Assembly (NCBI GenBank): GCA_907165135.1
Contig: OU015566.1
Coordinates: forward strand, 12,090,001-12,154,000
Reading direction: 5' to 3'
Source of the DNA: Oikopleura dioica
Lineage: Eukaryota > Animalia > Chordata
Length of the DNA stretch: 64,000 bases
Part shown: in pieces, positions 21,552 to 23,878 of the stretch
How the letters are laid out: each line of letters opens with the position of its first letter
How positions within the stretch are numbered: the stretch's first letter is position 1
Translations under genes and position numbers: made by a program
The notes under the pieces: generated by a model
Told to the model about the DNA's origin: nothing
What the model saw: only the letters and a program-made list of their open reading frames with translations
Databases searched by the model: none

Positions 21552-23878
21552 ATGTCGGTAGAAGGTGAAGTAAAGGATCAGGTCGAGGAGATGAAAATTG
21601 ACGAGCCTGTGGCAGAGGGAGCAGAAGCTCCAGCTCAGGATGCGCCTAAGAAAAAGAAGAAGAACAAGAAGAAGAAGAAAAACAATGCAAGCAAAGAAGG
21701 TATTCGATTATTATCCGCGTATATCATATACGGTATATGAAATGTATGACGAAAAACTATCCGTGCAATTCATTTTGCTTATGTTTTGGACGCTTGTTCG
21801 GTTTGAAATCGTGAAATTAAGGAGAAGGTGACCAAGGCGACGCTCCCGCAGAAGGTGAGGACGCCGACGAAGGTAACGATGGTGAAGGTGAAGGAGCACC
21901 TGCCGAAGGCGGTGAAGGCCAGAGTTTGACCTAAAAAAGCTGAGCGCCCACACTTCAAGTTGTACTTGACACGTCTCTGTGACAACAAATTTGTTTACAG
22001 TTACATTTGGCCAAGTACTCGCCGCCTACTGTGTAGGTACTGGCGGGCCTTGTGAAAAATGGGAAAACAAGTTTCCCTTTTCCAAACTCTGAGAAAAAGG
22101 CGGAGAGAGTAAATCGAAGAAGAAGCGCAATCGAAAGCGAAATAAGAAAGTTCAGCAGACTGATCCGCCCACGATCGCGATCAAAGATATTTTCAAGAAT
22201 GGAGTCTTCCCTGTTGGACAAGAATGTGAATACCCTACTCAGTCTGATATGTATGTGTCTATAGACATGTTTTTCGTAACAAAAATTCATAACAACGCCG
22301 TAATACCTATGTACCGTAAAATATTCAAGGCGATCGGCTATCTGGAGGCAGACGAACGAAGAGCGTAAAAACGCCGACAAGCTTTGGGAAGAGATTTGGA
22401 ATGACCATCGTCAGGCTGCCGAGGCTCATCGAACGACGCGAAAGCATCTGCAGGATTTCATCAAGCCTGGCATGTCGATGATTGAAATTTGGTGAGTCTT
22501 TATTACTCAATTAGCGGAGCTTTTGTTACGCCATTGTCTTGGCGAGTATGTTGAGAGATGAGATGGGAAAGTCGGCTCTAATATTTATTTTTTTCTAGTG
22601 AGAAACTGGAGGCCGCTTCAAGAGCTACAATCGGCGAAAGTGGGCTGGATGCTGGTCTTGCTTTCCCAACTGGTTGTTCGTTGAATCACTGCGCTGCTCA
22701 TTACACTCCAAACGCTGGAGATAAGACCGTCTTACAGGTATTTCAGAGATTTGTTGTCATTTTCATCATTCACTTTAGTATGATGACGTCTGCAAGATTG
22801 ATTTCGGTACGCACGTCAATGGTCGAATTATTGACTCTGCCTTTACTGTTGCGTTCAATCCCAAATATGACCGTCTTTTGGAAGCTGTCAAGGTTTGATA
22901 TGATTACTTTCCAAACGCATTTAATTGACTTACAGGATGCAACGAATACGGGTATCAAGAACGCTGGTATCGACGCCCGACTGAATGAAATTGGTGCAAT
23001 CATTCAGGAAACAATGGAAAGTTATGAAGTCGAACTCGACGGAAAGACCTATCAAGGTAAAAATAAGCGCTAGCCACTTACTTCTTCACTTGAGCACTAA
23101 ATCATTCACATCTACTGTAGTAACGTAGTCTTCATCACTCTAACCCTGTTCAGTAAAATCGATTCGTAACCTATCTGGTCACTCGATCGAGCAGTATCGT
23201 ATCCATGCGGGCAAATCAGTGCCGATCGTCGGCCCTGCTTCGGACCGATACTCCGCTTATCACGGAGACCCTCTCATGGAGGTAAATACAACTTACATTT
23301 ATATTCAGTTCGGCCCATTCGTAACCTTAATGGGCACTCTATTGGCCAGTACCAAATCCATGCCGGCAAAACCGTACCCATCGTTAAAGGGGGCGATCAA
23401 ACCAGGATGGAGGTGAGGCCGAGCAGAAGGTTTTTTGATGTCTAAACTCATCTTCTAGGAAAACGAAGTGTACGCCATTGAAACCTTCGGCTCAACTGGC
23501 AAAGGCTACGTCCACGATGACATGGATTGCTCTCACTACATGATCGAGTACAACAGCATCAACGACACGCCACAAGTCAGAACTGGTGGAGCGCGAAAAC
23601 TCTTCCACACGCTCAAGAAGAACTTCGGAACTCTCGCTTTCTGCCGAAGATGGATCGACAGACTCGGTGAAACTCGATACCTTGGCAACTTAAAGGTAGC
23701 CATTTTGCTTTGTTGAATAAGGACTGATCAGTTTTTTTAGCAACTTATCGATGCTGGAGTCGTCGATGCTTATCCACCACTTTGCGATGTCAAGGGTTGC
23801 TTCACTGCCCAATACGAACACACCATTCTGATGCGACCTACTTGCAAGGAAGTTGTTTCGCGAGGCGACGACTACTAA
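21552..23878 (+). CDS. METAP2: Methionine aminopeptidase 2
   Basis: Poly-Lys/acidic N-terminal extension, [88 protein letters not shown]. Confidence 0.97.

Follow-up and report, generated by a model that had tools for sequence, protein, structure and literature searches.

In a 64,000-nt stretch of the Oikopleura dioica genome (contig OU015566.1, positions 12,090,001 to 12,154,000; hereafter the window), the MetAP2 gene very probably contains a conserved pair of mutually exclusive exons, A and B, which derive from the tandem duplication of one exon and of which a single one enters each mRNA, giving two full-length enzymes. MetAP2 is an essential and much-studied co-translational enzyme and a drug target, and it is usually regarded as possessing just one catalytic core. 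An initial annotation, made from the letters of the window, had proposed that the two exons are used alternatively; in agreement with this, the four joints expected from such use were found among RNA reads with no joint between A and B, a full-length cDNA containing exon A was recovered from a metatranscriptome, and full-length proteins of both the A and the B type are present in metatranscriptomes.

Gene structure of MetAP2 and its alternative exons

The MetAP2 gene lies on the + strand and was modelled from open reading frames and frame continuity as 10 coding exons, designated e1 to e10, with the position between e7 and e9 filled by either A or B, and with all introns of the GT-AG type. The first coding exon (e1, 21552-21699, +), which has its ATG at 21552 and ends at a GT donor, encodes an acidic and poly-Lys N-terminus and aligns to positions 30-187 of the A-type cDNA mentioned above (L008). 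It is followed by e2 (21822-21923, +), supported by its AG and GT flanks, frame continuity and alignment to L008, and by e3 (22100-22250, +), which encodes a second poly-Lys block and also aligns to L008; the exact ends of both were inferred from the reading frame, in the case of e3 together with the cDNA alignment. Exon e4 (22330-22491, +) is supported by the gene model and by the same cDNA. The equivalent of His231 is encoded in e5 (22599-22737, +), whose joint to the next exon (22737 to 22779) is present in a contig of metatranscriptome X1, and the equivalents of Asp251 and Asp262 are encoded in e6 (22779-22892, +), both joints of which are found in the X1 contig. Exon e7 (22936-23056, +) ends in phase 1 and constitutes the common upstream exon, joined in reads to A as well as to B. 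Downstream of the alternative pair, the common exon e9 (23459-23695, +), with the Glu364 equivalent, was defined by the gene model and read joints, and the last coding exon, e10 (23741-23878, +), carries the Glu459 equivalent and the TAA stop codon (23876-23878), its joint with e9 (23695 to 23741) being present in the X1 contig.

Alternative exon A (23154-23281, +) comprises 128 nt, that is, 42 full codons plus 2 nt, and is preceded by AG and followed by GT; it is supported by read joints, by cDNA L008 and by orthologues in contigs L001-L007 and L010. Alternative exon B (23309-23412, +) comprises 104 nt, corresponds to the canonical version and to the major form, and is supported by its AG/GT flanks, read joints and the X1 contig. 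A GT..AG spacer of 27 nt (23282-23308, +), crossed by reads and kept in a second cDNA (L009), separates the two; it carries the donor signals of A and the acceptor signals of B, with a CTTAC branch-like motif 14 nt upstream of exon B. Each exon starts in phase 1 and ends in phase 0. Translation and the gene model thus reproduced exactly the coordinates, peptides and phases initially annotated for both exons, and the remaining structural claims were borne out as well: joining A to B shifts the frame, and the 27-nt gap is shorter than every other MetAP2 intron (41-176 nt). The coding sequence is open with A alone (479 aa) or with B alone (471 aa), and the inclusion of both exons, or of neither, results in a frameshift with premature stops in e9.

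The assignment of the gene to MetAP2 is based on PDB matches to the human enzyme and on the closest full-length relatives, all of which carry PF00557 (single exons are too short for Pfam scoring); across the aligned ~80% of the protein, the whole product is 62-71% identical to named chordate MetAP2s, the nearest of these being from teleosts and ascidians. This chordate affinity, the small introns (41-46 nt) and the occurrence in marine plankton RNA are consistent with O. dioica. Exons A and B are homologous to each other (19/25 identical residues, E 1e-13 in a pairwise BLASTP). Exon B corresponds to human MetAP2 residues 323-356 with 31 of 34 residues identical (E 2e-15), and exon A matches human residues 323-348 (E 3e-7) and diverges beyond. 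Among the 19 codons with a shared amino acid in the two exons, 10 differ at a silent site, which indicates that the duplication is old.

The initial annotation had stated that both exons keep the metal-ligand His of the GHS motif and the His of the IHAG motif, and this holds true, the two residues being His331 and His339 in human numbering. Moreover, the five metal ligands (human D251, D262, H331, E364 and E459), together with His231 and His339, are present in both window isoforms, and the same positions are invariant columns in alignment A3, A-type proteins included. The further claim that exon A alters neighbouring residues and adds 8 more was likewise accurate: compared with B, exon A in the window has S329, E334, S343 and G348 and extends the loop by 8 residues.

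Two other observations were made in the window. A single-exon ORF of 369 aa at 28270-29379 (+) shows a very strong match to PF07287 (E 1e-93), the AtuA family of acyclic terpene utilisation, which is unusual for an animal genome; it contains an AtuA ferredoxin-like domain in addition. A search of the window against Rfam found nothing.

Expression of both exons

Three oligo-dT RNA runs (X12-X14) and metatranscriptome X1 were aligned to positions 22560-23900. The raw reads of X12-X14 are 90-95% alike to the window and thus come from a diverged strain, and X1 is near-identical to it; eight marine metatranscriptome runs (poly-A) contain parts of the stretch. All four junctions proposed initially as a check on alternative use were found in the RNA of the diverged strain (coded samples). 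On the upstream side, e7 is joined to A in 1, 1 and 6 reads and to B in 5, 11 and 11 reads of X12, X13 and X14, respectively, with one further e7-to-B joint in an X1 contig at ~100% identity, which is the only upstream joint of an alternative exon assembled in X1. On the downstream side, A is joined to e9 in 4, 3 and 8 reads, and B to e9 in 58, 24 and 42 reads, in the same order of runs. At a share threshold of 1%, neither an A-to-B joint skipping the 27-nt spacer nor an e7-to-e9 joint skipping both exons is listed in X12-X14 or X1.

In X13 and X14, 18 and 13 reads, respectively, have loose ends immediately ahead of e9 in which the A tail of the diverged strain is recognised, and when loose ends are included, the ratio of A-to-e9 over B-to-e9 becomes ~9:65 in X12, 21:24 in X13 and 21:42 in X14; these ratios are rough, since reads from exon A are close to the likeness cut-off and exon A is therefore under-counted. 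Isoform A is thus, roughly, a minor to substantial form, the share of which varies among the coded samples X12-X14. Among the strain differences listed, those falling in exon A (at 23218, 23221, 23224 and 23273 with 23275) and those in the consensus of the loose ends are all synonymous; another 42 differences lie outside this listing. The strain of the reads also has a 1-nt deletion at 23288, within the spacer. At the 46-nt intron between B and e9 (23413-23458), the depth in X12 is ~5, compared with ~60 in exon B, which indicates that these poly-A libraries contain some unspliced RNA or some transcripts retaining the intron.

Complete transcripts were obtained from relatives. A pattern scan of JGI metagenomes, with alignment of A peptides, yielded L008, L009 and L010. 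L008 is a spliced full-length metatranscriptome cDNA containing A only, with an ORF of 476 aa (L008:33-1460) whose product, outside the alternative exon, is 97.7% identical to the window protein. L009 is a spliced cDNA from which the other covered introns (e5-e6 through e9-e10) have been removed and in which the 26-nt spacer between A and B is retained, leading to a premature stop. A search with the L008 ORF retrieved full-length metatranscriptome proteins of the A type (P0222, P0224 and P0234) and of the B type (P0223 and P0225-P0232), which form a clade with mutual identities of 79-98% in the catalytic domain; taking mRNAs and proteins together, full-length A forms were assembled from four taxa or more. 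A whole-library phmmer search with the 42-aa exon A peptide returned mostly short fragments, with an A-type tail in P0001 alone, and a region-restricted search for full-length A-type proteins gave three candidates, none of them of the A type. Within that large protein index, no named annotated protein contains isoform A. According to the reads of the diverged strain together with L008 and L009, then, productive mRNAs contain A or B, never both or neither, and the one product seen with both exons retains the spacer and has a shifted frame.

This last product raises the question of whether the exon pair serves dosage instead of a second enzyme, namely, that the choice of A, or the joint inclusion of A, spacer and B, yields unproductive or low-activity transcripts by which the MetAP2 level is tuned, as in regulated unproductive splicing. 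Spacer-retained transcripts with a premature stop are indeed polyadenylated and reach a level that allowed assembly (L009), and the reads likewise include some that extend into the spacer (in X12, 14 of the ~35 covering the start of B). Against this, the mRNA containing A alone has an open frame with all catalytic residues, and the amino acids of exon A are under purifying selection (see below), which a purely regulatory exon would not need. We therefore regard an explanation by dosage as unlikely, and favour the reading of the pair as two alternatives that both encode enzyme.

Conservation of the exon pair and selection on exon A

The same arrangement was found in genomic contigs of other lineages. 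The P0001 contigs L001 and L002 contain an exon A', an 18-nt GT..AG spacer and an exon B', and a length-matched word search of ocean metagenomes, Tara among them, led to proteins P0118-P0121 and to contigs L003-L007. Both exons occur in L001-L007, in L010 and in cDNA L009, with L008 containing A only, and A precedes B in every genomic contig (L001-L007 and L010, representing five further lineages). The spacer measures 18 nt in L001/L002 and in L005-L007, 20 nt in L004, 22 nt in L003, 26 nt as retained in cDNA L009, and 38 nt in L010 (186-420), a more distant relative. Every spacer has GT..AG ends, and the exons measure 116 or 128 nt (A) and 104 nt (B), both lengths always leaving a remainder of 2 when divided by three. 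Exon A is intact, in the right phase and with its GT/AG flanks, in at least six lineages besides that of the window.

Between taxa, pS is at or near saturation (0.5-0.96), against which pN ranges from 0.06 to 0.25 in A and from 0.01 to 0.09 in B; for unsaturated pS, pN/pS amounts to 0.03-0.19 in A and 0.01-0.06 in B, so exon A evolves faster than exon B. Four positions (human numbering) distinguish the two exons in all five aligned taxa, where they are fixed: 329 (S in A, N in B), 334 (E in A, G in B), 343 (S in A, T in B) and 348 (G in A, K in B); at position 334, the L008/L009 lineage, which is outside this alignment, has D. In addition, the tail of A, which has a conserved Tyr and terminates in x-(L/I)-M-E, is 13 or 17 residues long, compared with 9 for that of B. 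The intact frame, the low pN compared with a saturated pS, and the fixed A residues indicate, at the level of sequence, that exon A is a maintained coding exon and not a decaying copy.

These data bear directly on whether exon A could be a dead duplicate or pseudo-exon, included as splicing noise next to a B isoform that alone is functional. Such a view might draw on B being the major form in X12-X14 and the sole form assembled in X1, on the faster evolution of A, and on the absence of A from named database proteins within the index searched; nevertheless, exon A has stayed intact in seven lineages, that of the window included, despite saturated synonymous sites and with pN/pS of ~0.1-0.2, its specific residues are fixed across the five aligned taxa, full-length A mRNAs or proteins occur in at least four taxa, and its joint to e9, with loose ends counted, is sizeable in two runs (roughly 21:24 in X13 and 21:42 in X14, relative to B). 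This explanation is thus largely refuted, and we consider it very improbable. What the initial annotation had named as fatal to its own proposal, exon A never being included and decaying neutrally elsewhere, is the opposite of what was found: A is included, has remained intact in no fewer than six other lineages and shows purifying selection. An assembly artefact, in which alleles or haplotypes of a single exon would have been set one after the other and for which nothing speaks beyond the similarity of A and B, is refuted by the same tandem layout in eight independent contigs from different projects, by the differences between the exons (6 of 25 aligned residues, length, and saturated synonymous sites) and by RNA reads and L009 crossing the spacer, leaving this reading with practically no probability.

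Tandem copies related to this exon were also observed in other proteins. In P0034, the start of the same MetAP2 exon is repeated in tandem, in four or five degenerate copies (VKCVRNLQGHRIEPYRIHAV...), and P0004 contains a partial copy of it ~35 codons upstream of the complete exon; this MetAP2 exon may accordingly tend to undergo tandem duplication elsewhere among eukaryotes as well.

Probable mechanism of mutual exclusion

Steric interference and frame incompatibility are recognised mechanisms of mutually exclusive exons, the steric class being delimited by a distance from donor to branch site of less than 50 nt (PMC5740500). In the MetAP2 pair, the whole spacer is below that distance, with 27 nt in the window and 18, 18, 20, 22, 26 and 38 nt in relatives. 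Introns of O. dioica peak at 47 bp (PMC4122922), and the other introns of this gene are at least 41 nt long, so that the A/B spacer would be too short for an intron; furthermore, spacers of 18 nt leave no room, so the branch site of B would there have to overlap the donor of A or lie within exon A.

Based on this anatomy and on the transcripts seen, a steric block is most likely the main cause of exclusion, with frame incompatibility backing it. In most lineages, the donor of A and the branch site, pyrimidine tract and acceptor of B would have to share 18-27 nt; such a spacer would not be removable as an intron, and recognition of the signals of one exon probably blocks those of the other. If A is defined, B would be removed inside a 177-nt intron from A to e9, and if B is defined, A would be removed inside a 252-nt intron from e7 to B. 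If both outer sites are used, A, spacer and B would stay together as one exon, out of frame and with a premature stop, and the incompatibility of the two exons, each 2 modulo 3 in length, would thus act as a backstop to the steric block. In L010, where the spacer of 38 nt is near the size of a real intron, exclusion may depend on frame incompatibility alone.

A competing RNA structure was considered as another mechanism. An inverted repeat of 12 nt with 83% complementarity (23304-23315 / 23417-23428) could bring the acceptor region of exon B together with the beginning of the following intron, leaving exon B in the loop; folding of the region is not superior to that of shuffled sequences (z = -0.83) and no counterpart was seen in L001, hence it is probably due to chance.

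Predicted properties of isoform A

Isoform B (471 aa), the major form, represents the canonical MetAP2. Isoform A (479 aa) retains all catalytic residues and differs at four positions around the pocket mouth and in a longer hairpin loop that follows them. According to the literature, which in part consists of docking studies, the pocket of MetAP2 and its mouth are lined by Asn327/329, Leu328, His331, Arg337, Ile338, His339 and Thr343. The loop is of interest in relation to the ribosome: in the MAP2 of C. thermophilum (CtMAP2), His316 touches rRNA H24 at the tunnel exit (PMC10808355), and this residue corresponds to human Gly350 (offset 34, checked by alignment), which lies within the loop most divergent between A and B (human 348-354).

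S329, E334 and S343 are also encountered in other eukaryotes, among ordinary MetAP2s. These substitutions therefore need not change specificity, and, taken together with the retention of the catalytic residues, they make it probable that isoform A is active. We propose that isoform A is most likely an active aminopeptidase with a substrate entrance and a ribosome-facing loop unlike those of B. The loop, 4-8 residues longer and with a conserved Tyr, could alter both docking at the tunnel exit and the entrance of the pocket, and isoform A would then alter the nascent chains that are handled, or the seating of the enzyme at the tunnel exit. The initial annotation had suggested an isoform with altered substrate or inhibitor behaviour; the changed residues are placed by the literature at the mouth of the pocket, and such behaviour would be an inference from sequence. 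An AlphaFold2 model of the isoform A ORF (alignment of 61 rows) has a mean pLDDT of 65.7, with values below 50 over residues 315-358, that is, the whole alternative exon, a confidence too low for conclusions on this segment.

Discussion

Mutually exclusive exons that arise by tandem duplication and are enforced by steric interference and reading frame are well known, alpha-tropomyosin exons 2/3 being one example (class described in PMC5740500). The MetAP2 pair resembles this class in consisting of adjacent, homologous exons of the same phase, in a distance from donor to branch site that is too short, in exon lengths that are no multiple of three, and in the presence of one exon per mRNA. It differs in that the spacer is only 18-27 nt in most lineages, such that the whole intron, and not just the distance from donor to branch site, is below a spliceable size, and in that the 18-nt cases would put the branch site of B over the donor of A or inside exon A. 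Compared with human and other vertebrate MetAP2 (PDB 1B6A, 1BOA and others), the protein shares the poly-Lys N-terminus, the five metal ligands, His231 and His339, and, in exon B, 31 of 34 residues, whereas isoform A differs by S329, E334, S343 and G348 and by a lengthening of the loop from 9 to 13-17 residues.

The MetAP2 pair and its very short spacers appear to be undescribed, in line with the initial annotation, according to which such exons are not known to have been described for this gene. In full-text literature searches, no publication connected MetAP2 with mutually exclusive exons, METAP2 is absent from the main text of a survey of human mutually exclusive exons (PMC5740500), and no alternative version of this exon was seen among the named MetAP2 proteins listed. 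The one match containing both terms, once each, is a general proteomics-methods article (PMC6007231), and the Oikopleura literature gave no relevant match at the level of titles and abstracts.

Across lineages whose silent sites are saturated, evolution has preserved an alternative to the segment in which a metal ligand, the catalytic His339, the mouth of the pocket and the loop that, in a fungal MAP2 structure, touches the ribosome are located. This conserved exon pair therefore constitutes a natural experiment on the parts of MetAP2 that tune substrate choice or ribosome docking, and its 18-27-nt spacers provide an extreme and clean case of probable exclusion by overlapping signals, in a genome whose introns are near the minimum. 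As a more tentative extension, for which we hold a rather low expectation, the overlapping splice signals, with the branch site of B in the donor region of A or inside exon A, might form a hard-wired two-state switch, and isoform A might be a distinct variant in ribosome docking and substrate entrance that acts on different nascent chains in particular stages, sexes or tissues. If this were true, a compacted genome would build alternative splicing from overlapping splice signals, and not from long regulatory introns.
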